A stretch of DNA of 64,000 bases from Anthoceros angustus (Eukaryota; Plantae; Anthocerotophyta): positions 1 to 64,000 of the forward strand of contig MU008182.1 in NCBI GenBank assembly GCA_010909165.1, given 5' to 3'. The position numbers and the translations under genes were made by a program. The notes beneath the pieces were generated by a model, which was given only the letters and a program-made list of their open reading frames with translations, did not search any database and was not told the DNA's origin. Each line of letters begins with the position of its first letter. Position 1 is the first letter of the stretch. Positions 7,041-52,350 of the stretch are shown here, piece after piece.

Positions 7041-7299
7041 TCTCGGTTGTGGGCGTGGTTATGTGACCCAGAGATTATTAACAACACCATAATATTTGAG
7101 CCGTGGAATATACATCAAGCGGCTTTATGCATGTATATCTGTTGAACGGGTTCTGGATGGTCACTAAATCATGTTCTGCATGTAGTCATGGAGAATGTGT
7201 TCAAAATTATGGTGAATCACATTAGGTTCAAAATTGCAGCACACGCCAAAAAGGGTATGGTGGGGACATGCCAATGGGGTTTACCTTTGGTCTAGCCGT

Positions 7300-10200
7300 T
7301 CAAACTCCCTTTGTGCGGGATAATGAAACCGGCGATCTTTACATTATTGCCTTATAGTGAAGGGGAGCAGAGTTTTGTGGTTCCCATTTATGTAGAAGGT
7401 ATGGAAAATGTCTGTTTATATAAGTGTACAAGGGTGTACAAACTACCGCGCGCAATGCGCGCATGCGGCGCCATGTATCTACTGGCGAAATCCTTATCCA
7501 TTCCCTTTGCACAAATATGCCCAACATGGCCTTTTTAATATCCATTGTCGGAGGTAATGTCTTGTCTGTTCCATGTTCCTCTTCACCCCAGCAAAACCGA
7601 TTACATGGTATCTTGGCTGGGAGTTTCACGGAACATTGGGTGGGCGCCTAAGCAGATCCAGGGAACAAAGTCATGGCAGGCCGGTGAAATGAAGGTGCCA
7701 ATAGGAGCGGACACGAGAAAATGTTGTCGTGATGGGCTTAAGCATGCCACCACAAAGGGTGTGGAAAAGAGTTGCCGTAATTTGGAAGGGCGGACCATGG
7801 GTGGAATATATGTCGAGCCGTTCGGTCATTCACTCCTCACGACTCCAGACCGTCGGTTTCTCCATGTGGAATAAATCGTCATCACCATCATCCTCATTGT
7901 CCACCGGCGAAGTGCGAGGTTGAAGATGGGGCGGAGGCATAACTTCTCTTTGATAGCTTTTTATCCGCGCGTCTGGATGTTTCCTAAGTGAGATTGAACC
8001 CATAGTACACAATGGATCTTATGTACAAACAACCACGAGCGTTGGGTGGCTTCCATGCTTTTGCACCTTTGTTGGTAATGAAATTGTCTACCCTCCTCGG
8101 TCGACCAAGTATTCTCAGACATACTTGCCCTCGTAGGCATCGGTGTGCTCGGTTCGCCACGATGCACCGGCAAGTATGGGTCATCGGTCGGTGCACACTC
8201 AACACCTTTGCAACCCGAATGCCACATTGTGTGTCCCCTCACAAGGTGACAATAAACATACCTTTTTAATCATGATGTCACCATTCATCGCTCGACCTCT
8301 TGCTCCGTCTCTCCACACTCTGGTAAGCACCCAAGTACATGTCCGTTGAGGCACGTCTCGCAATAAGGCTTCGTCCAAGATAGCCTCCTCTGCGGCGGTA
8401 CAAGTGCCTGCTGCGGATCATCGCCACTTCCACGGACTTTTCAACACAAGGCCAATGTTGTCCACTATAGTTGCAATCTCCTCTTGATCCTTCGAAGTCA
8501 TTCCACCACTCCTCCTCTGCTGCGTTAACATATGTGGAAAGTTTGCAAACCCTTCCTTAAGTGCTCTACTCCTTCCGTGCGGTGAGCTTTCCATTGCCTT
8601 TCTTGTCCTTGGCACATAGAGCTAGCGTTGTGGGTCCTATCTCATTTGGAATAAAAGACAAGAACTCCATCTTACATTTCCCATAACGGTGAGGTCAGTC
8701 TTTACTCGGATACGGTAACTTTACCTGGAGTTTTCCTCAGCGTGATTTTGAATTGGTGTTGGAATGATAGATTATTGACTTGCGAACGCTGACTTTAAAC
8801 TTTAGCACACCTTTGTTTTCAAGCGGCGAAAGAGCGAAAGGAACCTCGGTCGGGACCTTCACTTACGGGTTTGGCGTGAGCATGTGGTCAATATATCGCA
8901 TAGCAGGAAGAGTTTTGGCCTCTTTGTGCTTCAAATGCTTGGAGAAACACGAGAACATTTGGTCAACTGGTCATGTGTGTGACCGAAGAAACCCACCTTC
9001 ACTTTCTCAAATGTCCCCATCTCCACGAGCATATTCGGATAAGCAAGCAGTTGATTCTTGTTCTCCGACATGTGTTGTCCAGTTGCAAATATAGAACCTT
9101 GGGAAGTAAGCCAACACGCATTATGTATCACATCTTGTATAATGCATATGGTTAAATTAGCATCGTTCGCAAATTTGCGTAGTGCGAGATCGCCCTTGTG
9201 AGCGTGTGATTGTGAATCATACACCCCACCACATGGTGTAACGGCTATCTTCCTTTAGCTCCTTAGGCCATCTAAGTATATGTCGGTAAGATGTTTTTTG
9301 ATCCATACCATCGATACATAATAACATGTACTTGTGAGGCTCGGTGTATCCTTTCGTTCGATGTTTTGTCAACTTCTTCCGCTCCTCCATAAGCTTTGTC
9401 GATGTTTGTTCAATGCCTCGATATATATCGCCGTAACCAAATGTCATGTCGGTGTCCATCAAGGACATATACCATCATTCACGACCCGGCGACCCTCCCA
9501 CTAACGCCTCATTTCAAATGCAATAGGCGAAGGGGTCGACTCCATTATAAGGGGGTCTGGCGATTGTCCTTGTAGAAAGGGGCCTAACCGCCTCGAGGTC
9601 AACCCCTAAGCGAACCTAGGGTTCGGGTTGTGTGGTCGTGTTGGGCCCTCAATGGTCCTCAGCTAGGCCCGCACAGGCGCTCTGAAAATCTTGAAGGCGA
9701 AGTCGGTGGCCGGCGTTCATCGCCCTTCAACCCCAATATGGTGGCGGCGGCCGCCCCCGTTTCCTCCTCCCCTTTCCCATCCCCTTCCACCTTCCACCAG
9801 GCGCGGCATCTGGCCTCATCTCCTGCGGGCCCCGGCATGCAGGCGCCGCCTCCCGCCCTTTCCGGGCATCCCGCGCCCTCCTCATCTCCCCTCCCGGCGA
9901 GAGCAGGCGCGCGGCATCGCTCCTCCTCTCCTCCACCCACAGGCGCATTCTAGAGAACATGCCCGCTTCCTCGACCAAGGGCGTCTGTCGTACCTCGACC
10001 AGGGTCAACATCCACCATCACAACGCCTTGCGTCATCGGATGGCCCACCTGTTGTCGCCCAACCTTTTTGCCCCATACCATGCCGAGAAAGCGGTGTGCG
10101 CGGAGCATACCTTGATCGTCGCGATCCGATTACTCGGATGTTGAACTTTAGGCGCGAACATGTTGAAAATCGATTGGATTTGGGTATCTTCACGGCGCGA

Positions 10201-12790
10201 AGTTACGCTCCCATAGTCTCGAGAAAATACTCTGAAATATCTGTTTTGCTCCATGCCACATTTGTATTGTGTCCACACTTCTAGCTTGGTGAAAGTGTCA
10301 GGAAGATTGTAGACTTCAACATTAGGCAGCCGCTCTGCCAATTGCAGAAATGTTGCATCCATCCATGCAATAGCGCCCAATGCATGAGATGATTTCACTC
10401 GGGGGTTTGGCTTGCTACCATCCCATGGTGAATTCAACAGTACTCTGCCCTTCACCTCCTCGTACCTTTCCGACCCTATGCAATACACCCTTCTGAAGGA
10501 TTTCAGGCAACACTTGATTGGAACCGGTGCCTTCGAAAATCTGGACTCTTTTCCTTTGATCCATTGAGTCGGGGCCTTACAAGGGTCTCTAGTATGTCTC
10601 TGCTCGGACCTTCCCAACATAAAAACCTTTGCCTCTCTTCTTGAAACCCTCCTTGAAAGTCGTTGGATACATACTTTGTTGCAACACGGTTTAAAATCTT
10701 AGAAGTGTCGCCTCGGTCTTCTTCAAGGAGACACCAGCCTCGCAAAGCAAGGTCGCTCGCTGCAATGTCTCCGACATTGGCTTGGATAATCTGACCGCTG
10801 AGCGAGGAGGGCAGGGAGGATGGGGAACGTTGCCATATGACAATATCTGCTCCCGATGCACCAAACTCCACGAGCATATTCGGATAAGCAAACAGCTTGA
10901 TTCTTGTTCTCCGACATGTGTTGTCCAGTTGCAAATATAGAACCTTGGGAAGTAAGCCATATGTATGTATCACATCTTGTATAATGCATATGGTTAAATT
11001 AGCATCGTTCGCAAATTTGCGTAGTGCGAGATCCCTTGAGCGTGTGATTGTGAATCACACCCCACCACATGGAATGGCTATCTTCCTTTAGCTCCTTAGG
11101 CCATCTAAGTATATGCGGTAAGATGTTTTTTGATCCATACCATCGATACATAACATGTACTTGTGAGGCTCGGTGTATCCTTTCGCTTCGATGTTTTGTC
11201 AACTTCTTCTTCCTCCATAAGCTTTATGCGATGTTTGTTCAATGCCTCGATATATATCGCCATACAACCAAATGTCATGTCGGTGTCCATCAAGGACATA
11301 TACCATCATTCACGACCAACCCCACTAACGCCTCATTTCAAATGCAATGAGCGAAGGGTCGACCATTATAAGTGGGGTCTAGGCGATTGTCCATGTAGGG
11401 GCAAAGGGCAGACCCTAACCCCTCGGAGGTCAACCTAAACGAACCTAGGGTTCCGGGTTGTGTGGTCCATATTGAGGCCCTCAATGGTCCTCAACGCTAG
11501 GCGCCCGGGCTGGCGCTGAAAATCTTGAGGCGAAAGTGTCCAGGCCCGGCTCATTCGCCCTTCAACAATATGGGCGCGGCGCGCGAACCCCTTCCTCCTC
11601 CCCTTTCCCATCCCCTTCCACCTTTCCACCAGGCGGCATGCGCCTCCTCCCATCTCCCTGCGGGCCCGGCGCAGGCGCCGCCTCCCGCCCTTTCCGGGCG
11701 CGCATCTGCCGCGCCTCCTCATCCCCTCCCGGCGGCGGCGCGCATCTGCCTCCTCCTCTCCTCCAAACGAGGCGCATTCTAGAACATGCCCGCCTTCCTC
11801 GACCAAGGCCGCCGATCGTACCTCGACCAAGGGTCAACATCCACCATCACAACATACCATATCGGATGGCCCACCTTGACGCCCAACCTTTTTGCCCCTT
11901 TATACCATGTGAAAAAGCGGTGTGCGGCGATGAGCATACCTTGATCATCGCGATCCGATTCGGATGTTGAACTTTAGACCGGTACGAGAACATGTTGAAA
12001 ATCGATTGGATTTGGGTATCTTCGCGCTTGAAGTTCGCTCCCATAGTCTCGTAGAAATGCACGAAATATCTGCAGCCGTTTTGCTCCATGCCACATTTGT
12101 ATTGTGTCCACACTTCTAGCTTGGTGAAAGTGTCGGGAAGATTGTAGACTTCAACATTAGGCGGCTACGCCAATTGCGAAATGTTGCATCCATCCATGCA
12201 ATAGCCAATGCATGAGATGATTTCACCCGGGGTTTGCTACCATCCCATGGTGAATTCAACGATGCTCTACCCTTCACCTCCTCATACCTTTCCGACCCTA
12301 TACACACCTTAAAGGATTTGAGGCAACACTTGATTGGAACCGGTGCCTTGAAAGTCTGAGACTGTCTTTCCGATCCTTGGTCGCCTTACAAGGGTCTCTA
12401 AGTATGTCTCTCACCTCACCTTCCCAACATAAGAAACCTTTGCCTCTCTTCTTGAAACCCTCCTTGAAAGTCGTTGGATACATACTTTGTTGCAACACGG
12501 TTTAAAATCTTCGCGTGTCCGCCGGTCTTCTTCAAGGAGACACCAGCCTCGCAAAGCAAGGTCGCTCGCTGCAATGTCTCCGACATTGGCTTGATGATAT
12601 CTGGCTGCGCAGGAGGGAGGGGGGGGGAACGTTGCCGCCAGCAATATCCCTCCCGATGCACCAAACACTCCACAGGCGCGAGACCTCATGGCACGTTGAT
12701 TCGACCGGCGGGCGATCGCCTCGTCTCTCGGGGCTAAGTTCCATAGCCGCATACAAGCGAGTTCTCGGTGGCACATAGGGAGGCACGAGA
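7300..12790 (-). mobile_element. DDD/E transposase-like gene (resembles the family I recall as DUF7869; Sola1/CMC-like motifs), frameshifted and partly duplicated
   Basis: Motifs in order on -: WMDATF.QLAE..PNVEVYNLPDTFTKLEVW, IPKSNRFSTCS (~10190), KHRTKGYTEPHKYMLLCIDGMDQ (~9300), LPKVLYLQLDNTC(R)ENKN (~9050-9105), GHTHDQ(I)DQMFSCFSKHL (~8930-8983), HQFKI (~8750), CKGVECAPTDDPYLPVH (~8170-8215). Confidence 0.8.
9021..12673. repeat. Tandem duplication of ~1.8 kb (9021-10865 / 10866-12667)
   Basis: Sequence from 10866 (CTCCACGAGCATATTCGGATAAGC...) repeats that from 9021. CTCCAC microhomology at 9021, 10866 and 12668. The copies differ by many small indels. Confidence 0.9.
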
Positions 12791-14579
12791 ATGGTTATGA
12801 GTCCTTGCCATCCACAGGCACATCACGATTTTCACGAGAACAAGGTGAAGCACATCTCATCCGATTACCACTCCGGCAAATCGGTGAGCCGATTTCGACT
12901 TGTCTACATAAACGTACGATACACGGGTTGTCCACAAAGAGCATTCGGGCTTCGGTCCCTTGCTGGCAAAGTTGCAAGCGTTTGGAAATAGATCTGGATG
13001 CCCTTTCGCATGTAGGCCTCTTTGAGCGAGGCATTACGATGTATACAAGTTCCGCCATCTGCGTCGATCGACGCATGACACCGGTATGAACAACGTTCCG
13101 GTGATAGGACTACGAGCGTGAAGGCGTATTATGAAAATTACCTCTGTGTCTTCGCCGGTATGGGTGGAGTGGAGCATGGTGTTGCAGAGGCGTCTGCGGC
13201 GTGACGCGATCGCACCCTATGAACAGGAGGAACACAAGAGGGCACAATCATATGAGACATAGCGAGGCGGATGCCTCGGGAAGGCATCTTTCCAGCATTC
13301 CTGGCGGAAGATTTACCTATCGGCACGGATCCGGCCGTTATTCTAGCGGTCATTAAAGTTGCGGCTTTTGCCGTTAGGGATCGGAAGGCTTTAATGTATG
13401 CCAGTGCAACACGGTTGGAAAACATGGGCACCGTGTTAATAAAATCGTGCAAAAGGTGCGCCACACCAAATAGGTTAAGTGGAAAAACAAACATCATAGG
13501 CGGTGCGATTCATCTGCGCTATTAACCCCTTGCCACGATTTTTGTAAGCCAATTTCCTTTAATGGGCGTTCACGGTCTGCCTGTTCATCGCGTGAGTTGC
13601 GCTCCACTGAAACGTGAAGGCCTGCAGATTGCACTCCTCCAAGCGCGGTCGATTTTTGACGTGCGGGCGCCATTGCGATTGTGAGTGCGCGTCACGCCTC
13701 CTTTGCAGCGGAGAGGAATTTGGTGTCTCCGTATGCATCTTGCTTGTGATCGGGGCAATGGCAAGTGGGCGGCCGGAAGGACTTAGCGGGGTGGGAGAAG
13801 AAGGCGCCGCATGTGGACAAACCAAAAGCGTCGGAAGAAATCAAAGCGAAGGCGAGCACACGCACAGCCGTGTGGAGTGGATGGACACCAAAGTTCGAGC
13901 CGACTGGTTCCAATTGGCGCATCGGCTTGGAAGTAACGTGAACACGATGTTGGAGGCGCCACGGCCAACTTCTGGATCCGGGATCGGTGAGCACGAAGGG
14001 AGCGGGGCGGGAGGAAATCGAGATGGCCAAGTCACGAAGGCAGTGCCAAATTCTAATCCTTCACCTTTTCGTTTGAGGCTGTTCAATTGCAGACACACTA
14101 AGATTGATGAGACGATTGTCAGAAGGCGGCTTGTGACACAGTGCGCGAGATGAAGACAATGTGGTGTGGACACCTATGTTGAAATTATGGATTTATGGCC
14201 TGGTGCTGCCGAATCGACGAGGCTGGATTTGTGGTATGGGCAACTTTAATAGAAGCGGAAGGAGATCCGGATATTCGGTCTTGGTGACTTCAAGCCTTAT
14301 GGGTTTGAAGCTTTGCGATTGAGTCGACTACGGTGTGTTGTCTTGAGCATAGCGAGGCTTGGCAAAAAGTGTGAGCCACGTGTTGTCTCTTAAATTAGAA
14401 GCTCTTGACCACGGATTGTAAGTGTGTGCATGTCTTTGGTTGCCATTGATTTTGAAGTTTGCATCATCTTGCATCCACTAACCACTTTTGGAACTTCTAA
14501 CGTTGCGAATGCAAGGAATTTTTATCGATGCTTATGTGAGGTGATTACAAGTTCTATCATCAATCACCGTCGAGATGTC

Positions 14580-17500
14580 TTTTGAAGGACCAGGTGGGCG
14601 ATTATGAATTGGAAGGAGATGAGGCGAGGCAGTATGGACCCTCGGATGAAGAGGATGATATCGGGCTTGGCCAAACGGATATGTGTCGGAGGAGGATGGT
14701 GATAGCAGGTGAGGAGGCGGATTGCAGTTTCCTCCATCTTGGTATGCCAGTGCCTTACAATCCTGAGTGAGGACATGGGTCGCGGCCGGCGGTACTGCCG
14801 GTGGGAGAACATGGGTTGGGCACCTCAGGCGGCTGGTTTATATCGGTATGAAGGCATGGGAGGCGGGCGTGCCGGCGCCTTCCACGCCTCCCGCAGGAAG
14901 GCGGCATCCGGCCTACTATGGGGTGCGCAGCCACCAGTCGGTGGAATGGAAGGAGGCGCCGGCATCTGCCGCCTGGCGCCACAGGGGGCGGCATCAGCCC
15001 GGCTGCGGATGGGGCGGGCGTAGGCATGCGCGCCCACCGTGGGATGCGAGAGGGCGGCGCATGCGCGCCTCTGCCCTGGATCTCTGCGAGGAGGAAGGCG
15101 CGGCATGCGCCCCGCCATGGGAGGCGGATGGTGGGCGGCATGCGCCTCCCGGCCTGGGGAAGCGGAGGAGGCGGCATGCGGCGCCCTCCCTGCGAAGAAG
15201 AGGAGGCGCGGCAGGCGCGTCAGGCTGAAGATGGTGGGCGTGTCGGAGTCTGGAAGCGAGTTCAAGCGGTTGGTATGGGGGTCGTGGGCGGCGAGATTTG
15301 AGAAGGAAGAAAATGGCGCGTGAGCAAAAGATGATATTGAGCTATGCATGTCGGTGATGGGGAGAGGTGGAGGCCTCCATCGAGGATGAAGATTATTTGC
15401 GGAATATCGGAGGCCTTACGAAAGAAAGTGGTTCGGAAGCAGTTCTTGAAATTAGAGAATTTAAGGCTGCATCCTTTCTTCTCCGGATGCATTCGGATTG
15501 TGGATGAGCTTGGACCAACTACGGCTCGATTATTTGAAAAGGTTGAGGAAGGTGTCTTGCCTCTATGCATGATTGACCCGGTGCGGCGACATTCTATATC
15601 TGAGTTTAGAGCCAAGAAGTATGTCATGGGAGTGCTCGGTGGCAATCACACCTGCGATGAAACATCGGGACATATCTCCATCGAAGGCGAGATACCAATG
15701 GATGGAAGCCCATGTCTGTGTGGGCTCACTTTACGAGAGATGAGGTTACGGCCGACCACAACACCATGTCGACAAGCGGAGGAAGATGAATTTCATTGAG
15801 CAAGTTAGTACTGCGAGATGAGTTGCAGATAGCAAAAGGATGGTCAATATGACCATGAGCTGGAAGTTCAACTGTATAAGGTCTTGGCTTGATAGATGAT
15901 GATGAGGCGAGAGAGGATGGCCCTATACCGAGTTGCTTGGCCAAACAGATGACGAACCGTCGGAGGAGGATGGTGATGGGTGAGGAGGATGATTGCAGAT
16001 TTCCCATGTTGGTGCCAACGGTGCCTTACAATCCGGTGAAGATATCGCATGGGTCAGGGAATTGCCCGTGGGAGAACATGGGGTTGGGCACCCCGCGCCT
16101 GGTTTATATCCTGCATGAGGAGGAGGAAGGCGGCGATGCCCTTCCTGACCTCCTGCAGAAGGCGGCATCCCAAAGACACGGCAGCACCCAGAGTCGTGGA
16201 AGGAGGCGCCGCATGCCGCGCCCGCCGGCCCGGGATGGAGGGGGGCCGGCGCCCTTCCGCCTTTTGATGGAGGCGGCCGCATGCCGCCCGACCGCCATGG
16301 GATGGAGGGAGGCGCATGCCGCGCCTCTGCCAGGATGGGAGGAAGGGCGCCGCATGCCGGCGCCATGGGAGGCGCCGGCATGCCGCCCGTGCCATGGGAG
16401 GATGGAGGGCGCGCCGCCGCTCACGGAGGACGGCGCGCATGCCGCGCCCCGTGAACTCAAGATGGTGGAGGCGATCCGGAGTAGGGAAGCGGGAGTTCAA
16501 CCGCAGCTTGGTATGGGGAGGTCGCCAAACGTGGAGGCCGGCGAGAATTGAGAAGGAAGAAAGGCAAGCGCCAGGGAGCCGATACCAACGATATTCCGAC
16601 TATGCATGTTGCGATGGGGAGAGGCGGAGGCCTCCATCATGATGAAGATTATTTGCGGAATATCGTAGACCATACGCCAAAAAGTGAAAATGTTCTCGGC
16701 TAGAGAATTTAAGGCCCATCCTTTCTTACTCCGATGCATGATTCGGATTGTGGACAGGCATGGACCAACCACCGGCTCGAGTTATTTCGAAAGGTCGGGT
16801 TGAGGAAGGTGCCGCCTCATGCATGATTGACCCATCGACGCAGCGACATTCAATCTATAATAAGTTTAGAGCCAAGAAGTATGTGATGGGGAGTGCTCGG
16901 GGGCAATCACACCTATGCAGCGATGAAGCATCCGTATACATATCCATCAAGGCCGATTCCAATGGATGGAAGCCCATGTCTATTGTGGGCTCACACAGAG
17001 ATGAGGGTTCCGCCATGACCACAACACCATGTCCGATAAACGGGAGGAAGATGACTTTCATTGAGCAAGTTCGGTATCTGCGAGATGAGTTGCGTAGCAA
17101 AAAGGGACGGAGTCAATATGACCATGAACTGGAAGTTCAACCTATATAAGGCTTGATAGATGATGATGAGGCCGAGAGGATGAGTGATAAGCAAAACAAG
17201 GTCGACAATCGCACATATCCTTTGCATCATCTTGAGGGAGAGTGTGGGAAAATGTCGATAAGATCTTCACAGTGGGAGGCCATGGAGTTGCGAACAAGCC
17301 AAACATGTTCTGCGAGGAACAAGCAAAAAGCAAGGGAAGCGGAAGGCTGCGGATGAGGCGAAGTCGGTGGACCAAAGTTTTGTGAAGCCAAAAGACATGC
17401 AAGGAAGCCTTGGCGAAGTTTTGAGGTATTCCACCGGGTGAGGGCCAAAAATGTTGATCGATGTCATGAGAAGGTCTGACAGTCTCATAGACCTCAATGG

Positions 17501-18620
17501 TATGGCCAAGGAGATCACTCTTGGAAGAAACTACATGTGATCCAAGTGGCTATGGCGAAGCATCTAGGCTGCAATTCATTCGAGATGGTGAGGAAGGAGT
17601 ACCCGGTGCACTCAACGGATGAAGTCATTGCAGTTCGGCTTTGAAGGAAGGTGAGTTTTGTTGTTCTTACGTATAGAACTATTGAGGCGGCATGCGCTCC
17701 CTATTGTCCCCATAATCGACTTTCGGCAACCTCACTTGTTTTGTGTTATTTTGCAAGTTAAAGATGTTGAAGACGAAAAAGCTACGAAGATTTCCAGCTT
17801 TTATATTAGAGGTCCACACATGGAAAGGGCTGGAGGATGAGCGGAGGGCACTTGCGGACATGGACATGGAGGAAGGGCTGCAATCATCGTGCCCAAAACA
17901 GAGGAGTTAGTAAAGTATCAAGTGGTGCTTGAGATGTGGCGAAATGAGAGGGTTTCTTTGGGTCGGAGTATACAGCGGTGATGGATGTCCCAGTTCAACA
18001 AGGGAAGTATGATGTCAAACTTGAGCGCAAATGGCAAACATATTTCATTCCTTCCATGACATGACAATGTGCGACGAGATCGAATGATAGTAATGCATGG
18101 TGTGGAAGAGCATATTGTCGGGGAGAGTATGAGGAAGTGGTGTGCGGTGGAGGCATGGTCTCATTTGTTTGGGACAAAACTAATATGCACAATGACCAAG
18201 GAGGCTTTGACCATGGAGTACATCAACATGGGGTGGGGTGTGACTGCACGAGCAAGAAGACAAAGGTGTCCATCTTTGCCGAATACCTTGCGGGCTCTTT
18301 CAATAATGGGCGGTTATTGCACAGCCGTGGTGAAGAAGTTATTATACATGTCATTTGGACAATTTGGTTGTTTCGCGTATCGAGGCCAGGTCTAATGATG
18401 AAGTTGATCAAGAACTTCTCGAGAAGGAGATTGGATATTAGATGCATGTGCGGTGGAACAACGACATTAGCGGCACTCCTTTGTGGTGCATTCTGCATTG
18501 TGGAGGTTGACAAGCTGCGAGTTCATTCATAAAAGTTCATGGCTATGAAGTTTCTGGAGGAGGAGTTGACCCATGAGCCACCTGAGGCCCCACCCAGTGG
18601 GCAAAAGAATTGAGCTTGTC
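14580..18620 (+). mobile_element. Spliced gene for ParB-like domain + beta-class N4/N6 DNA methyltransferase (TE-associated, frameshifted in this assembly)
   Basis: ParB-like: GVLPLCMIDP...KKYVMGVLGGNH (15632-15649; again 16893-16910)...WMEAHVYCGLT...HDHN...MTFIEQVRYLRDEL. Intron donor AAG/GTGAGT at 17651. MTase: YTAVMDVP (~17970-17992, motif IV position), FVWDK (~18165-18180), LMMKLIKNFS/REGDWILDACA/GGTTTLAALLCGAFCIVEVDK (18390-18515, motifs X-I-II). Confidence 0.75.
14618..17164. repeat. Tandem duplication of ~1.27 kb (14618-15900 / 15901-17164) covering the ParB-like domain
   Basis: Both units contain the GC-rich GGCATGCCGGCGCC-type tract followed by the GGNH block. GATGAGGC(C)GAG microhomology at 14618, 15901 and 17165. 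Confidence 0.9.
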
Positions 18621-18956
18621 AGAAGGATGCATCCCGAGGCCAGTAGTCCCACTTGGGTTGAGCGGGATGAAGAGGCGGAGATCTTATAGATGATCGCCGC
18701 AAACCTGTCTGCATTGTGGCATCGACTATTTGGAGAAGAGCAAGGAGGATGCGACGATATCGCGGAAATGCTATGGTCAGCGACAATTTTGAGGATCCAG
18801 GGATGCTCGACTCCGAAGGACGGAAGTTGTGTTAGATAGCGTGTCAGGACAATGCCCTCCGGAGCCACAGTCTCAAGCCGAGAATCCCCCTCTGTAGGGA
18901 AGTGAGTCTAGTTTACTTTTGAAAGTACCATAACCTGCATGGTTAGAACTCAGACA

Positions 18957-18978
18957 GGGCGCCGGCATGCCGGCGCCC
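18957..18978. repeat. Perfect 22-bp palindrome GGGCGCCGGCATGCCGGCGCCC
   Basis: Self-complementary by inspection. Degenerate versions of this motif fill 9780-9960, 11620-11790, 14860-15200 and 16130-16450. Confidence 0.95.
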
Positions 18979-20246
18979 GTTATGCCTCCTTCTTTAACTA
19001 TGAGCGACATTGTTATTCGTTTTGTCAGGATGACTTCTGTTGACGGCTGCAAAATATCCATAGAGCTCGTTTCACACCTATAAGACATTCGTCGTGCACC
19101 GTAGGAGAGGTCCAGAATGCACCAACATACCCACATTCGTGTGAAAGCACCCACAAAGCGGGATGCATGGAAACACTAAACTTGCGGACTACCGGATTTG
19201 GATGGGGAACGTTGGTCCGGGTTTTCAGCGGTTCGTATATTCCGCGGTTCAAATATTATGGTGTTTAGCAACCATGTCATCATCAATCCTCCAGGTTGGG
19301 CAGCGGAAGGGAGCGCAACTAAGAAAATTTACAACATGTGCCTATGCAAAGAAGGTCACATTTTCATCCCCTTGCCATTGAAATCCATGGGGCCTTGGGT
19401 GAGTTTTTCTAGTTTTATCAGTGCGCAAGGGCCTACCACAACGACAGGGGCGGGGTTGGCCTCCCCCTTTCCAATGTCGTGGCATATTTCAGGCAACGGG
19501 TTTCCATCGCCTTGCAAAGGGCGTTGGCCGGCGCCATCTTTAGGACGATCATGAGTATTGGAGACGGGGCATCGGCGGCACCAATGGTAAGTAGGCCCTT
19601 CCCTATCTCAAACGGTGACATCATGGGGGCGGTTGGGGGTTATAGGGTAGATTAGTGCAGGGGCATGCCCCCCCCCTAGCTTGGTGCCCCATCGTGGGTT
19701 GTCCCCTTTCGCCTAGGGGTAGATGGGATTTCCCATTTCGTTCTTTTCATAAAGTCTCCACATCCCTATCTTATTCTTGGCACCTTTGATCGGTTTGGAT
19801 GCTCTCTTTTATGTTTTGTTTGCAGCTTTGTTTGGCTTTTCAACTTTGCGCCATGTTGAGCATTCATATGCAGATTCATTTTCTTAAGAATGAGAGAATG
19901 AGGTGTCTTAGTCTTATCATGCCTAAATTGTCATGGTATTTGGTGTATGCATCAGTTGGGTGGCATTTTATGGTGCGAAAGTGTGGCGGCCTAGATGTTC
20001 GGAAACAAGGTGAAATTTCATACATATGTATGTAAATAGATTACATATAGACTACTTACTATATGTCTAAACTCTTAGGGTATTTGATGCATGCAATCTA
20101 GACAATGATCAAAAAGTCAAATACCACACTGGATTAACAATAGCATTGCGCCGAGTTGCAACCGGCCATTTGAATATGCTGTGTGTTTTTAATGTTTTTG
20201 CAAGAGATGGTAACTACTCTTAAAGGCATTCATAACATAATCTGTT

Positions 20247-39296: not shown

Positions 39297-42200
39297 ATGG
39301 GCGAGCGCGAAAGGGATCGCGACCGCGCTCGACCCTTCACAGACGCCGCATTGGCCTCGCTATGGATAGATTTTGTTCTGCTCCCCGACAAGCTGGAGGA
39401 GCATTTGGCCGGGCTAGCGTCTGGCTCGCTGGACGGGCCCCTCCCTGCGGATTTGATCACTATGTTGTTGGACCAGGTGCTGGTCAACCACAAGGCTGCG
39501 CTTGCCAGTGCCACCGGCTCCTCGGCCTCCAAGGACGGGGTATGTATTTTATGTGTATTCTTCATTTCCGTTCCTCTCTCATTTCTCCTCCTCTTGCAAA
39601 TCCGGTACTGTCTGTTTCAAATTGCTGCTTCTCTACATTGCATTCAACATTTGCTTATAGCTGCTCGTTCAACACCACCCCAGTCGGCCCGTCCCTCCTT
39701 TGGCCAGCGGGTTTCCCAGATCCTTGTCTGCTGCCGGCCTGTGTCACAGCCATGCCTGCATCGCTCACCAATTCCGGATTCCTCTTTGCTCTGCGCAACC
39801 CTCTTCTAGCTGGTAGAGACGGCACTCGGTTGCCTTGACGCCTCCCGTCGTTGCCTGTATTCTTGGGAAGTGCCGTGAAATCTCAGAACATGAACGAAAG
39901 TGTCCGCGCTGTGCCTTTCCATCTTCTTCCACCTCCGCAGACGTGTTTCTTTAAGCGAATTTGAGGCGAACTGACTTTGTTGCCTGGTGACGCTCTGAAG
40001 GTCCTTTGTATAGAAATTCGTTTTTTGAGACTGTAAGGTTTTCCACAAGAGTGTGGATAAATCACTGCACCATTGCGTGCACTATCGGAAGCTTTTCGCT
40101 CCCATATCTCTCCTCCGGTTCACCTGCTGGTGGCCAAAAGGTTGTCAATTGGCTAGCTGTCAAGGTACAGGTAGGTTATACCGTGTCTATTCTGTGAGCG
40201 GCCGGTGTTAGATTCTGTAGATATCTCTCTACAGTGTGTCTGTCACTCGCTATGGGAGTCTAAGGTAAGTTTTGATGTCCAGGAGAAGCCGAAGGGCTTG
40301 TGGGGAGGAAGAGCCACGAGGAGTCGACCTTGCATACTCCAGGATTTCCTCCTACCTCCAAGATTACTGCGGCACCATCCTGGCAGTAATGTGCCACTGT
40401 TATGATTTTTGTGAGATTGTCGTTCACTGAAGAATGGGGTTTGGGATTTTCACCAGAACAAGATTCTCACTTCATGGCTTGTATGTTGGGCAGTTTGCCC
40501 AAGGTGTTGAGGGAAGAACTCCGAACCCGCTGCTCGGGACTCATCCAGGCCATGCACATTTGTATGGCAGGCTCTCGTGCCTGGTGTGGCCGAGTGCAGA
40601 ATCTTCTTTTAAAAAATTGCCCTCTAATTTGACTTATTGTTGCATACTGCTATTCTCGTCAGATAGTGAATGGGGAGGATCGAGGTAGTGTGGAGTGAGG
40701 TACATGTATGAGTCCAAAAGAATGAGTTTACGTCGTGACCTTGCTGGCTGCTACCAACCCCTATGCCGGATTATCACATCAAATAAACTGCCCTGAACTG
40801 CGTCAATCTGCATGACGTGAATTGGCCTGACAATTTCGCTTATGGTTGGTTCTGTGGTACAGGATGGCCAGACTGCATTAAATGGGACAAGTAAAACTGT
40901 GGGCAAAACAACGGCCTTGTTATGCGAAAGAGCGGCCAGAGTGGCTGTTGCTGCAAACCTGTCACTTTCAGATATTGAGTCCTTGATATCTTCTCAACAA
41001 CATCAGTATCTTTTACTGAGAGCTCTAATGCAGCATGATCAAGCCAGATTACTAGTCCACGAGTGCAATCTGCATAGGTGGCGTATCCACAATTCACTTC
41101 ATGCTGCAAATGTGCACTCATTTGATGATCTTGCTGACCTGTTTAAGGCTCCAAGACCGGGAGTTGTTGATCCTGTGTCTACTAGAGCTGCGGGTGATTC
41201 TGTTACAGAAGAGGAAAGTTCTTCAGTTCATTTTTTGGAACGAGTTTTCTGTCAAGATGAGAATCAGATTGCAGCTCCTGCCAGTATGTCCAGGGATATT
41301 GAGGTCCAGCCTTTGAAGAAAGATGACGGTTTTGATGAAATTCCAAATGTTGGAAATGGAGGTCCTGTGAAGAAGTTACAGCTTTTCAGCATTGATTACC
41401 AGTGCAAGGCTTTGTTCGATGTTGCTGAGGCTCATTTCATGAGGGGGCGAATTGCAAGAGCTCATGCAATTTTTACAAAGTGTGGACAGCTTTTTGCATC
41501 ATCTTCGGATGTCCAAAGTGGGTGTAGGAAGCAACGACAGGTAGGGGTGCAGGAGGATAGGCTGGTTGGCTTTATAATAGCCTGTAGAATGCTGCTGGCT
41601 AAAGCGAACTCTCCAAACGGTGACCAAGATAGAGTGATAGATATCACAGCTTCCCCACTACCCGAACTTGGGGCTCCAACTCCTGCTCAATCGGCTGTCA
41701 TAGCCTGTGAGCAGAGTAGATGGCTTGCAAGGGAAAGTGGGAGAGGACTTTCCACGGAGAAGCAAGGACTGCATAAGCCTCTGTCCGTGACTGAACCAGC
41801 CAGTGAATTAGGCTTCAGATCCAAAAGGTGTGCTGAAGAAAGGGAGTCAGAGACATCCGTGAGTAAGAGGAGGAAATTGGAACTGCTGCAACCAAACCAG
41901 TTAAATCAGACCCAGTTCCCAGGGGAAATGGAAGATGTTAGAGGGGCTCCAGCTAGTACGGTTGATGGGCAGATGTCAGTAGGATTCTTGGAAGGGAGCT
42001 GCCTTGTCCGTGGGTGTGCCCAGGGAAGTAGGGGTGACCACCTTGTACCCTGTCCAGCAGCAGAGGAGACTGATGTCGCTCGAACAGTTGATTCGAGAGA
42101 TGCTGCAAGTCAGCAGGTGGGTCAAGAAATATTGCACCGGGAGACTAAAGATGCTTTTAGTGCTGCCAGCAGCATGCAGTCAGTAGCATGCAAGGAGATT

Positions 42201-44916
42201 GTCCAAACGTTTGTGGAGGACCTACCCAATGGGTTTTTATCTTGGGGCTATGCTCTGTCCGTTGAACAGGATCCAAACCTTCCAGCCTCTGTACAATGCC
42301 AACTTGCAGGCTGTAATATTGTACGTAGTGTTCTTGAAGGGGCTCCGGTTGAGTCATTCCTCCGTGTTAGCAACCGGTTTGAACATAGCGAGGTTGGCAT
42401 GGAGTTCTTTCTCAAGCTTGTGTTTTCTGCAAGAGGGATGGAAATAAAAACTTCAAAAAGAACTCTTAGATGTGTGAGAAGGGGTGCAAGCAAAGTAGGT
42501 CAACTGGCACAGCAATTTCTCACGCATGGAGTAGATGAAATGTCACAGGGAGTACTGGAGGGCGACTTGCTGGCTCAGCGGATGGATGAGCTGGCTATCT
42601 ACGCGTGTTGCATAATTGATCAGCCTTGGTGCTGGGCGTTAGCAACTTCCACTGGCTTCACCATACCTGCTGGTCTGACAGGATTGTGCGGAGATAGCAC
42701 CTCTGTGGAAAATTGGGAACAAGGTGCTGCAATTGGTCCACAGGGTGGTAAGGTGCGTGATGCAGGTGGATTGTCAAGCCAAGAAAGGTTGAGGTTTGGG
42801 ACTTCAGATCTAGATCCAGAGATCATTAAGGGGCGAGTCATGTTTGCACTAGTTCAAGCAGACTCTCTTTCAGAATTTGAAGCCATTGTATCAGATGCCA
42901 AGATATTCTTAAGCACCCAAGTTGTTGATGCGAAGGGACGCATGTATGGAGATAATGAGGTGTTCAGCAAACGGTGCATGACCTGCTCATATCAGTCCCA
43001 GGGAGGTAGTGCAACAGAACTCTGTGCTGTGTGTCGTGCTTCAGCTGATGGCAATTCAGAAACTCTAACAGCAAACATGGCTGGTATCTTGAGGCAGAGA
43101 GCTTTTGATGCCTTAGAGAACATGAAGGAGGTAGCGATAGCAAAGCGCTTGTATCAATTAGCAAAAGTGTGTGATCCGGGTGATTTTGATAGCGAGGTAA
43201 TGCTATGGTTAGTGGACAAGCTGATTCCAACAAAAAGTGTAGGAACAGATAACCGTAGCGAAGGACTTCCAACAGGTCTCAGAACTTTTTTTCTCCCTAG
43301 TTCTCACCTTGTGGAGTATGTCATTTTAAGTCTTATAGACAGGGAATCCTGGGTTTACTTGAGGGAATTTTGTCAGTGGTGTACAATGCTGCATAAGGAG
43401 ATGTCACATCCAGAACGAGGGCCTCAGAAGTTTCAGGGTGAGGGACATAAAAGCAAAGCCCGACCAGTATCTCTAGAGGGGGATCCTAGTATGGTGTTCG
43501 CTCATGTTGACATGCTAGCTAGCCACCGGAAGCAACTACAGACACTGAGGGTGGCCACGGCTTTGGGGGACTTGATGCCACTCTGTGAAGCAGCTGCTTC
43601 CAGGAATCATTCTAATGAGGAGGCAAGCAGACTTGGCTCTACTTTGTGGCAACGTTTTGAAGATTTTTTGTGTCTTCTTGTTGGGGTGGAGGTTACTAGC
43701 TCAGTCCAAGGACGCGAGGATTCCATGTTGAAACCACCATACCCTGGTGCAAAAGGTGTACCCCTTCTATCAAGGGTGCAAAATCCAGCAGTGCTCACGA
43801 GTTTGGCTAGCTTGACAGCGGGTTGGCTTCGGAGATGCAATGCTGCAGGCTTGACACCATGGGCCCCAGCTGTTGACAGGTACGGGGTCCTTGCGGCAGT
43901 GACAGGAGGAGCTTCGCTGCCTCCCCCTATTGGGTCCTTGCCCCATGCTGCTGCAATTTACCGACCTGTGCTGCCCAAGGTCTCGCCTGAGTTTGGTAGG
44001 GACTTGTTCAGAGTTTTGTTAGAGGGAATTGTGGCTTTGCCAGGAGAACCGGATGGAGGGAAGGAGAGGGGACATTGCTGGCTGCAAGGTCTCGCTGATT
44101 TAGCTTATGAAGATGAATTCTATGTGAAGGCTTTGCAGCTGTACCTTCAGGTGTTCTACCCATCTTGTTTCCCTGCAATAGGAGTGCGAATCCTTTCCCT
44201 TGTTTCAACACTGAGCAACTGCTGATGATCTACGAAATGTTGTTCAGATTCTGTGAAATGTTGACAATTGTGTGAGAAACTTGTGGCAGGCAGGTGCCAT
44301 CAGAAGTGCACATTACTGTGATTCCAGTTCCTCCATGCCAGGCGACATCTTTACTCAGGAAGTGGTATGTTCTGACCCGTTCTACCATGTCAGGCGCTGA
44401 GATATGCTGTGTTGTGAAGAAACTGAAAAAATGTTTTTCTCCTCCTTACACAGATCAGAAGAATGATAAATGCATGCAGAGCGATAGGAGGAGGTCTGCA
44501 GGCTGCCATTCTGTGTCAATGTCTCACGCCGCCAGACTATGAATCCGCTTTTCGTTATTTACAAGATAATTTTCCTATTTTGGATAAGGATGCCGCAGCA
44601 TACTTCCAATGTATCTGGGAGGTGCGCACTCTCCTTCAGTACGTCCTTGCTTGCCTTTTAAAGAAAGTGCTCGGACCGTGTTGTTAGATTCAGGACACTG
44701 AGTTTGGCTTTCGGTTGGGATTTGCAGGTTCCACTGCTTGAGCTTCTCGTCCATATGTATGAAAAGGGAGGGGATGAAGCACGCGTCAACATTCTTATTG
44801 GTTATCTTCAACATCCTGCGATGAACGTGCATAATCCACAAGCGATACGAAAGGCGCACATAACTTCAATGGAACAGCGGTTCCTGCAGCAGCTCTCACA
44901 AGAGCTTCTCGGATGA
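39297..44916 (+). CDS. INTS8: Integrator complex subunit 8 homologue
   Basis: N-terminal WIDFVLLPDKLEEHL...GPLPADLITMLLDQ and C-terminal LADLAY...ALQLYLQ/AGA...IFTQEV/IRRMINAC...AAILCQ...DYESAFRYLQ...YFQCIWE/VPLLELLVHMYEKGG...MNVHNP...RFLQQL match metazoan INTS8 as I recall it. One 3.3 kb exon (40863-44150). Confidence 0.85.
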
Positions 44917-50939: not shown

Positions 50940-52350
50940 CTTCAAAATTGAATTGAAATTACCTTGCCCTCAAACGCCGTTTGGAATCTAGCGACAACTT
51001 CGTCAGTGGAGTGCTGAGGATACTCCTGTCTCACCATCTCGAAAGATGAACACCCAAGGTGCTTGGCCATTGCCACCTGAATGATATGCAACTTTTTTCG
51101 CAAAATAATTTCATCCGACATACCCTTCAAATCGATGAGACCAGTGAGCACTTTTTCAGTTGCATTGATAAGCATTTGCTGCCCGCTTTCGCCTGTTGGA
51201 ATGCCTTGAAAGCAACGCCAGGGCTTTGTCTGCATCTCCTTCGGTTTCACAAATACCCCTTCCTTCCCTACTAGAAAAGGGCACCCTATGTTACAATCGA
51301 TGTTGGAATTTTTTGTTACACTTCCACATTGCAACATGTTTTGGAGGTTTGGTATTAAGTTTGTTAGTTCTGTGCCCGTTTGGTGCAGCCATCTTAACAC
51401 GAACCTAGCACTCTCTCTTCCCACCTCACCCTTCTCGGTACACCCCTCTCTCACAAGCATTGTTAATAATTTCCCACCGCCTTGTTACGTGGTTGCAATT
51501 TTATGTAACACTTCCAACTTGCAACATGTTTTGATGGCTTGGTGTTAAGTTGGTCCATTTTTCTCTTCCTTCTCCCACCATCCTAACACAATGCTTGGTC
51601 TCTCACTTCATGTACCACTTCAAAATTGCAACACTTTATGGTGGCTTGGTGTGTGGTGTCAATTTCTTATCCACCTTCTCACCCCATCTTAACACAATGC
51701 TTGGTCTCTCTCCTCTCACCTCACCCGCTAGTTATTGCCCCTTATCACACCCTTTTATACTCTTTCACTTCTCCTCCTCCATCATGACCGTGAGAAGGAC
51801 CTCCCTATCACAACCATTTTATACTCTTCCCTCTTCCTCTTGCAACATGATTGTAACAAGGACCTCTCTCTCCGGGGCCTTCCTTCCTTCCTATTTTACC
51901 TCCTTTGCATATCCTTTGTATACATATATATGTATATAGGCTTCAAGACATAAGTATGTGTAAGTATGTGTACATATATATGTACACATCCATCTGTTAT
52001 ACTTATATTATATTAGTGTATTTATATGCCTCCTTTGTATATATATATGACGTATATAGGCGTCAAGACTTGTTTATATAGTAATATGTATAGCTAACCC
52101 TTACGTCACTCTCATACCTTGCATATATAAGTGTTTGATTTTATTGACAAATTAATTGGAATTTTTGGAGTTCAAGCGTCCTCTATCCCTTTTCAAAGAT
52201 CGGCTTTTTGTTGCCACGATGCAATTGGCTTTATCTACAAACATGTACGCCTTCCAAGTGATATGGCCATATGCTCTTGACGCCACTTGGTGACTCTTAC
52301 CAACACCATTGTTTTCGTGGTTCCTCCACAACTTCCTAGACCTATCCAGC
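50940..52350 (-). mobile_element. Second, diverged fragment of the ParB-MTase gene family
   Basis: FVKPKEMQ.KPWRCFQGIP.GE...LIDLKGMSDEIILRKKLHIIQVAMAKHLGCSSFEMVRQEYPQHSTDEVVARFQTAFEGK/ aligns with 17370-17650 and ends at the same intron donor (50961-50962). A weak GGNH-like remnant and FVNKIKHLY lie at ~52110-52335. Confidence 0.75.

Follow-up and report, generated by a model that had tools for sequence, protein, structure and literature searches.

The nearest described counterpart of the locus analysed here is Sola1-1_Ec32, a 21.5-kb element of the brown alga Ectocarpus that encodes a 1104-aa protein with ParB-like and N4C/N6A methyltransferase domains opposite a transposase, and for which self-binding and self-modification have been proposed (Dinatale et al, 2025; PMC12477816). 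ParB-linked methylases are also known from phages, at ParB-terminase loci, and a Dam-ParB-helix-turn-helix (HTH) family has been described in chlorophytes and chytrids (Iyer, Zhang & Aravind, 2016; PMC4738411). We analysed a 64,000-nt stretch of the land plant Anthoceros angustus (contig MU008182.1, positions 1–64,000; hereafter the window), in which a plus-strand locus at 14580–18620 had been read from the sequence alone as an intron-containing plant gene fusing a ParB-like domain to a prokaryote-type DNA amino-methyltransferase. Our analysis makes it very probable that this locus is not a host gene but an accessory gene, now a pseudogene, of an ancient cut-and-paste DNA transposon that is itself dead (7083–19265, with 31-bp inverted ends).

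The window element shares its gene pair with Sola1-1_Ec32, and orthology of the two may be proposed from their architecture; the hosts differ, a brown alga in one case and a land plant in the other, and the window copy is dead. Like the family to which the window gene belongs, the phage and chlorophyte ParB-methylases join a ParB-type domain to a DNA amino-methyltransferase and are predicted to modify the DNA of their own element (PMC4738411). The chlorophyte/chytrid family, however, uses a Dam (group-2) methylase and not a PF01555 enzyme, whereas the phage PF01555 enzymes, which are 22–25% identical where at least half of the query is covered, keep DPPY and have neither introns nor a DDE transposase partner. 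The beta-class N6-adenine enzymes CcrM, M.RsrI and M.MboIIA have the same motif order, QKP and motif I as the window family, but carry DPPY as motif IV, lack a ParB-like domain and are bacterial host or restriction-modification enzymes. Marchantia MpDN4MT1a/b and bdelloid N4CMT resemble the family as prokaryote-type amino-methyltransferases in eukaryotic genomes; MpDN4MT1 and N4CMT are host genes, unlike the transposon-borne window family. N4CMT has an S-type SPPY motif and is not known to carry a ParB domain. The D at the first motif IV position sets the window family apart from such S-type writers of N4-methylcytosine (4mC). For MpDN4MT1 the catalytic motif is TSPPY, and the report on it leaves a ParB domain unmentioned and does not describe transposon carriage (bioRxiv 10.1101/2021.02.12.428880). 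Plavaka transposons of Bostrychia and Chondrus carry the accessory genes PAG2 (N6A-methylase-SET) and PAG3 (ParB-like-2OG-oxygenase), and inverted-repeat arrays beside the PAG3 ParB gene have been proposed as self-binding sites (bioRxiv 10.1101/2025.02.11.637652). These arrays parallel the palindromes found in one relative of the window element (see below), but PAG2 and PAG3 place the domains on two proteins and belong to another transposon superfamily, unlike the fused window family. No report of the transposase and ParB-methyltransferase gene pair in a land plant was found in the searchable literature.

Relatives of the window gene were reached through an exhaustive phmmer search with an intact 172-aa piece of a second, fragmentary copy in the window (window copy 2), which returned only 4 proteins and was the gateway to all others. 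Word-based protein searches recovered few relatives, and sets of predicted proteins contain little of this family. Its members include the Ginkgo gene models Gb_37443 (P0007) and Gb_10123 (P0014), among others, the Ceratopteris gene KP509_1Z236600 (P0008), the contigs L001, L002 and L004, whose source is a pair of public runs in a single series (SRR33208241, SRR33208242), and the 9.4-kb metagenome contig L003 (1–9404).

The plus strand of 14580–18620 contains no long open reading frame (ORF), and all the strings on which the sequence-only reading had relied are present in its three forward frames. Plain tblastn of the relatives against the window recovered the linker and short ParB pieces and missed the methyltransferase part, and a frameshift-aware aligner was therefore written: a Smith–Waterman comparison of protein to DNA in which 1-nt frameshifts are allowed and stops are read through, scored against shuffled DNA. 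The ParB-like core and linker (16823–17632) aligned to Ceratopteris P0008 with a score of 152 (shuffles 38 ± 3; z 38; 8 frameshifts, 3 stops), to L002 with 146 (z 34; 10 frameshifts, 2 stops) and to Ginkgo P0014 with 139 (z 24; 9 frameshifts, 3 stops). The methyltransferase part (18081–18530) aligned to P0015 with a score of 85 (z 9.1; 6 frameshifts), to Ginkgo P0007 with 80 (z 8.8; 6 frameshifts) and to L002 with 64 (z 8.0; 5 frameshifts), and the strings brought into register were RMIVMHG, VWDK, YRRP for PYQKP, and LIKNFS-EGDWILD-CGGTTTLAALL-CIVEVD. The quoted ParB-like, linker, intron and methyltransferase strings are thereby real, and the order proposed for them holds in the family alignment and in the window positions alike: ParB-like domain, helical linker, intron, and a beta-class amino-methyltransferase in which motif I comes after motif IV.

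The state of the gene is another matter, for it had been read as an intron-containing plant gene and is not a working one. It is broken by no fewer than 14 frameshifts and 3 stops in addition to a large internal duplication (Table 1), and no contig matching 14580–18620 was found in the one RNA run of the same sample. Because of the internal duplications, the many 1–2-nt indels and the stop codons, the window copy makes no protein: it is dead. Word depths of 100–260 over 16900–18450 in the DNA run made from the source sample show the family to be high-copy there.

The locus lies within a transposon. A single pair of 31-bp inverted repeats occurs in the 64-kb window, where none is expected by chance, and it brackets both the ParB-methyltransferase remnant and a set of transposase remnants in a span of 12.2 kb (7083–19265). 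The two sets of remnants stand on opposite strands, head-to-head, and both are broken; the ORF at 8931–9224 matches PF25273 (DUF7869) at 31.8 bits (cut-off 26). The unique repeat pair and the opposite-strand transposase remnants bear out the earlier suggestion that a transposon had carried the gene. The same partnership is found in relatives: on L002 a DUF7869 transposase (168 bits) is head-to-head with the ParB-methyltransferase gene, the two being divergent there and convergent on L003.

The ParB-like and methyltransferase parts are, judged by sequence comparison, one gene, because the intron position is common to family members, the L003 splice is in frame and the Ginkgo models are fused. 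The intron of the window gene has the same position in window copy 2 (the 50942–51460 fragment), in L002 and in L003 (2517–2753). On L003 the exon ends GATCAG/GT (2516) and the acceptor AG/2754 creates an in-frame junction with the methyltransferase exon; the sole defect of that gene is a TAG (2435–2437) where relatives have a conserved tryptophan, the ParB/HTH exon being otherwise open, and this single codon is the reason that the gene caller split the gene in two. In the Ginkgo gene models the two domains are fused. The ParB-like part has moreover been conserved: over its 150 codons the ratio of nonsynonymous to synonymous substitution rates (dN/dS) between L002:3375–4841 and L004:1716–2756, from the same sample, is 0.055, and over the low-complexity N-terminal tail it is 0.26, both values being rough because dS is saturated. 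This indicates, at the level of codon comparison, that the ParB-like domain of the family is kept by purifying selection.

Table 1. Coordinates of the features of the ParB-methyltransferase locus, its transposon and window copy 2 (window positions)
Feature	Coordinates	Strand	Support or detail
Left terminal inverted repeat (AACACCATAATATTTGAGCCG...)	7083..7113	+	29/31 match to 19265-19235 inverted; flank 4-mers TAAC / TAGC
Transposase catalytic part, copy b (DGMDQ, LQLDNT..ENKN, GHTHDQ), pseudogene	8424..9384	-	score 362 vs L003 transposase, z 68, 91/183 identical (50%), 5 frameshifts; 330 vs L002, 11 frameshifts, 4 stops
Internal tandem duplication of transposase region	9021-10871 and 10866-12673 (span 9021..12673)		86% identity
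Transposase N-terminal Cys-rich part, copy b	10155..10689	-	score 203 vs L003 N-terminal exon, z 38
Transposase catalytic part, copy a, cut at duplication boundary	10866..11211	-	score 235, z 78
Transposase N-terminal part, copy a	11987..12500	-	score 138, z 21
Internal tandem duplication, 5' half of ParB-methyltransferase gene	14665-15919 and 15935-17182 (span 14665..17182)	+	73% identity
ParB-like core, first duplicate (VLGGNHT.., YQWMEAHV)	15551..15845	+	tblastn vs L002 exon A, E 0.003 for each of two pieces; family profile E 0.0026
ParB-like core, second duplicate (VLGGNHTYAA, FQWMEAHVYCGLT, DHNTMS, MTFIEQVRYLRDEL)	16823..17146	+	frameshift-aware alignment, z 24-38
Helical linker, likely ParB helix-turn-helix part (VWENVDKIF, PWRSFEGI, VAMAKHLGCNSFEMVRKEYPVHSTDE), up to exon end	17153..17651	+	alignments to relatives
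GT..AG intron, phase 1, 107 nt	17652..17758	+	donor GT at 17652, acceptor AG at 17757-17758; position as in relatives
Methyltransferase exon start, putative motif IV D-V-P at 17984-17992	17759..18080	+	position only
Methyltransferase C-terminal two thirds: RMIVMHG, VWDK (18167-18178), YRRP (= PYQKP), motif I EGDWILD-C-GGTTT (about 18408-18470), CIVEVD	18081..18530	+	frameshift-aware alignment z 8-9, 5-6 frameshifts
Perfect 22-nt GC-rich palindrome, GCATGC core	18957..18978		287 nt inside right end; similar one at 7448-7471 near left end
Right terminal inverted repeat	19235..19265	-	partner of 7083-7113; 16-bp unit x2.1 at 19224-19257
Window copy 2: isolated fragment of second, diverged family member, linker/HTH exon only, ending at same intron donor (...AFEGK/gt)	aligned 50954..51247; 172-codon ORF 50942-51460	-	score 107 vs P0008, z 29; 70% nucleotide identity to 17379-17625

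The assignment of the N-terminal part came from structure. By sequence profile no match to PF02195 (ParB_N) was found in the family. An AlphaFold model of the ParB-like exon (predicted local distance difference test score, pLDDT, 61) returned ParB, Noc, Spo0J, PadC or KorB as all of its top 19 Foldseek matches in the PDB (best E 3.6e-3, probability 1.0), with sulfiredoxin lower in the list. For the ESM-Atlas model of the L003 exon (pLDDT 0.71), 7 of 10 rows were ParB_N or ParB_N+HTH_ParB proteins, with template modelling (TM) scores of 0.47–0.56 over 214–235 residues, and the matches to ParB_N+HTH_ParB proteins covered the linker/HTH part of L003 as well. These models support a ParB-like fold for the N-terminal part of the family, and what had been called a linker is probably the ParB helix-turn-helix part. 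Across the family the invariant residues are V-x-G-G-x-H-S-x-x-A-R ... A-G-L ... D-H-N ... R, and the opening block of these seems to resemble the Srx-like GGxH motif more than GERRxRA, the GxxRxxA-type arginine box that serves CTP binding. Two leads were set aside: lambda exonuclease, the sole return of a PDB profile search with the ParB-like part (E 0.15), was taken as a chance match, and an AlphaFold model of a 151-aa Ginkgo ParB segment (pLDDT 50) was too poor for use. As a lead only, without support from hidden Markov models (HMMs), protein-language-model features placed the L003 ParB-like exon (1457–2437) nearest to fungal DUF3723 clusters (score 0.96, 184/256 shared). DUF3723 features in the literature on Starship giant transposons, in which it is a conserved accessory gene.

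The methyltransferase domain was recognized directly in the relatives. PF01555 (N6_N4_Mtase) matched P0007 at 65.7 bits, P0014 at 68.9, the L002 exon at 43.3 and P0015 at 34.8 (cut-off 26.7); phrog_67 'DNA methyltransferase' matched P0007 (E 1.5e-27) and P0014 (E 8.8e-21); and NCBIfam gave CcrM-type matches below threshold only. Against the PDB the family methyltransferase profile found CcrM (6pbd) as its best match (E 2.6e-12), together with M.RsrI (1eg2) and M.MboIIA (1g60), over a range of 2.6e-12 to 4e-8, and matched the bdelloid N4CMT structures more weakly (E 3e-7). The ESM-Atlas model of P0015 matched ten PF01555 clusters, 8 of the 10 at TM 0.74–0.82 by target, while the decayed methyltransferase ORF of the window returned noise only. 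The HMM and structure searches that had been proposed thus recognized the methyltransferase domain in the relatives and, by structure, supported a ParB-like fold there; Pfam found neither domain in the window pieces. In the alignment with bacterial members, motif IV precedes motif I in the beta-class order, as do the window DVP (17984) and motif I (near 18408–18470). Motif I (GDWVLDLFSGSGTT) and NPYQKP vary little or not at all in the family, corresponding in the window to EGDWILD-C-GGTTT and YRRP across frameshifts, and a W-x-K motif is conserved.

Motif IV is the exception. Its family form is D-[ILV]-P-[YHR], the second proline being replaced in every member seen and the aromatic residue often lost, and the activity of the family is therefore unproven. 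The motif had been placed at 'DVP' in the window; its position, ~32 codons before RMIVMHG, and a local match of EYTAVMDVP to Ginkgo EYSLMIVDIP agree with this. Over 17976–17993, high-depth DNA-run contigs carry +T, +T and +A relative to the window, with which DVPVQQ would become DVPRFN. Sequence comparison suggests that the family in the source genome has R at the usual aromatic position, as does L002 (DLPRG). A motif IV with D at the first position fits adenine enzymes better. With this residue and the best PDB matches considered together, we lean towards adenine N6 as the putative target of the family.

Short repeats occur in the window element and in its relatives L003 and L002. On the intact element of L003 (1–9404) the 12-bp palindrome GATACCGGTATC occurs in 22 copies with at most 1 mismatch, against 0.01 expected, and nearly all of them lie between the ORFs: in subterminal arrays (34–381 and 8039–8301), in the conserved intron (2550–2711) and in the stretch that separates the convergent 3′ ends. 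The palindrome is a candidate for a parS-like site or for a target of methylation. In the conserved intron of L002 (5100–5400), TTCATGCTTAC is present six times, along with 2 of the 5 contig-wide copies of CCGGTCAACCGG. Exact palindromes were not strongly enriched in the window element; the degenerate GGCGGCATGC (at most 1 mismatch) occurs 28 times in the window against 5.3 expected, 18 of these inside the element, with clusters at 14900–15179 and 16161–16446 and one copy in the intron (17686). The clusters are inside the tandem duplicates, so that the counts are not independent. A GC-rich palindrome with a GCATGC core, like those near the two ends (Table 1), is also present at 16349–16386.

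According to our model, the element once comprised a minus-strand DUF7869-type DDE transposase gene, probably of the kind that the curators of a brown-alga genome name Sola1, and a divergent, spliced plus-strand gene for a ParB-like/HTH-PF01555 methyltransferase; after insertion, both genes underwent internal tandem duplication and accumulated many 1–2-nt indels and stops. In intact members, the ParB-like part would bind short, repeated and often palindromic motifs across the non-coding DNA of its own element, and the methyltransferase would then mark the element in cis, at adenine N6 more likely than at cytosine N4. Such a mark might tune transcription or transposition, or shield the element from host silencing. 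The purifying selection on the ParB-like part, the repeats of L003, L002 and the window, and the GC-rich palindromes near the ends fit a scheme in which a ParB-like protein recognizes DNA of its own element and a methyltransferase acts in cis. We hold this mechanism tentatively, as a proposal that falls slightly short of an even chance. It is improbable, though worth stating, that members still active in this land-plant genome or in close relatives combine a ParB-like clamp on element palindromes with a D-V-P-R methyltransferase writing N6-methyladenine (6mA) or 4mC on the element; were it true, a self-marking transposon would provide land plants with a layer of amino-methylation apart from the 5-methylcytosine (5mC) machinery of the host.

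The locus itself is a fossil without function, and the family matters more than the copy. If a transposon encodes a protein that both binds and methylates DNA, it could label its own sequence with a mark other than 5mC, an idea raised so far only for algae. The occurrence of the protein family in this land plant, Ginkgo and a fern, together with the purifying selection on its ParB-like part and the 12-bp palindromes of L003, makes the idea testable. Given the degenerate motif IV, the family enzyme may equally be inactive.

Several observations weigh against the interpretation of the locus as a dead transposon gene for a ParB-like methyltransferase. Pfam found zero matches in the eight raw ORF pieces of the window gene. 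The target-site duplication is imperfect, TAAC and TAGC differing by one base, and the Sola1 label for the window element would follow from analogy of architecture with Ectocarpus, DUF7869 being equated with Sola1 by analogy only. The ParB assignment derives from modest structural scores and low-confidence models (pLDDT 50–61), and its sequence-level counterparts are below threshold: DUF6551, found in 4 of the 7 members at E 0.002–0.035, and, in the linker part of L003, HTH_ParB at E 0.038. For motif IV, the canonical (D/N/S)-P-P-(Y/F/W) is absent from the window (DVPVQ), L002 (DLPRG), Ginkgo (DIPHG) and L003 (DIPYG), and local alignment of the 'DVP' stretch (17759–18080) was not significant (z ≤ 1.8), so that the placement of this motif in the window is backed by position and local match but not by alignment of the stretch. 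Palindrome binding, methyl transfer and the target base are each inferred.

Four other explanations of the data were considered, three of which concern the locus. It is scarcely credible that 14580–18620 is an intron-containing plant gene, working or only lightly damaged, with a recent origin in a prokaryote or phage and a product that deposits 4mC or 6mA on the DNA of host or transposon. The order of domains and of beta-class motifs that this reading supposes is real, and putative RNA runs of a related species contain contigs matching both sides of the intron at the spacing of a spliced message (see below), but the frameshifts, stops and 73%-identical internal duplication, the lack of a contig at the locus in the same-sample RNA run, and the position inside inverted repeats beside a dead transposase all argue against a functional gene. 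Nor do the relatives support a recent horizontal acquisition. No close prokaryotic donor was found, the best phage methyltransferases being only 22–25% identical where at least half of the query is covered, and there is therefore no sign of a recent one; the gene occurs with the same intron position on two other public contigs, and the family in Ginkgo, Ceratopteris and the published brown alga. The conservation of the intron and the breadth of the distribution among eukaryotes indicate that the gene has long belonged to eukaryotic transposons. That the frameshifts are assembly indel errors in an intact locus is also very improbable, even though many of the breaks are 1–2-nt slips and, at several of them, the contigs of DNA run X2 show indels relative to the window. 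The same window contains an unbroken 1127-codon ORF and a 364-codon PPR ORF, and the assembly is therefore not indel-ridden; in-frame stops are present besides the indels; the tandem duplicates are 27% different, which reflects real age; and the X2 contigs are a high-depth repeat consensus from paralogues, with most of the depth agreeing with the window at some sites (e.g. 18082).

The poor alignment of the intervening 17759–18080 is what could be expected if the ParB-like and methyltransferase parts were unrelated pieces, joined by chance through nested or adjacent elements. We give this almost no weight, since their order, strand and intron position are repeated in L002 and L003, the L003 splice joins the exons in frame, both parts are fused in the Ginkgo models, and the two domains also share the protein published from Ectocarpus (PMC12477816). 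Joined as they are in L002, L003 and Ginkgo, the two parts do not look like separate elements, an outcome that would have undone the original proposal. The remaining explanation concerns the family and deserves more consideration, although we judge it unlikely: that methyl transfer has been lost from the methyltransferase fold and that the protein serves the transposon as a ParB-like DNA clamp or as a regulator that binds S-adenosylmethionine. The loss of the second proline of motif IV in every member seen, and the R or H at the aromatic position in L002, Ginkgo and, putatively, the family of the source genome, would be in keeping with a pseudo-enzyme, whereas the D-I-P-Y-G retained by L003 and the conservation of motif I, the QKP motif and the W-x-K motif speak for catalysis. 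For the locus, the pseudogenised transposon gene thus remains our preferred reading.

Elsewhere in the window, no ParB core, methyltransferase or transposase remnant was found near the aligned part of window copy 2 (50954–51247). The unbroken 1127-codon ORF lies at 40842–44225 (+) and has no Pfam match at E ≤ 0.001. Finally, in the putative RNA runs of a related species (X5, X13 and X20; run type guessed), contigs of 1.8–3.2 kb with a depth of 18–114 match the window at 17574–17601 and 18164–18211, with 496 nt between the two matches. The corresponding spacing is 562 nt in the window, including the 107-nt intron, and ~490 nt in the spliced Ginkgo equivalent. By its length, the 496-nt spacing agrees with a spliced transcript from a diverged member of the family.

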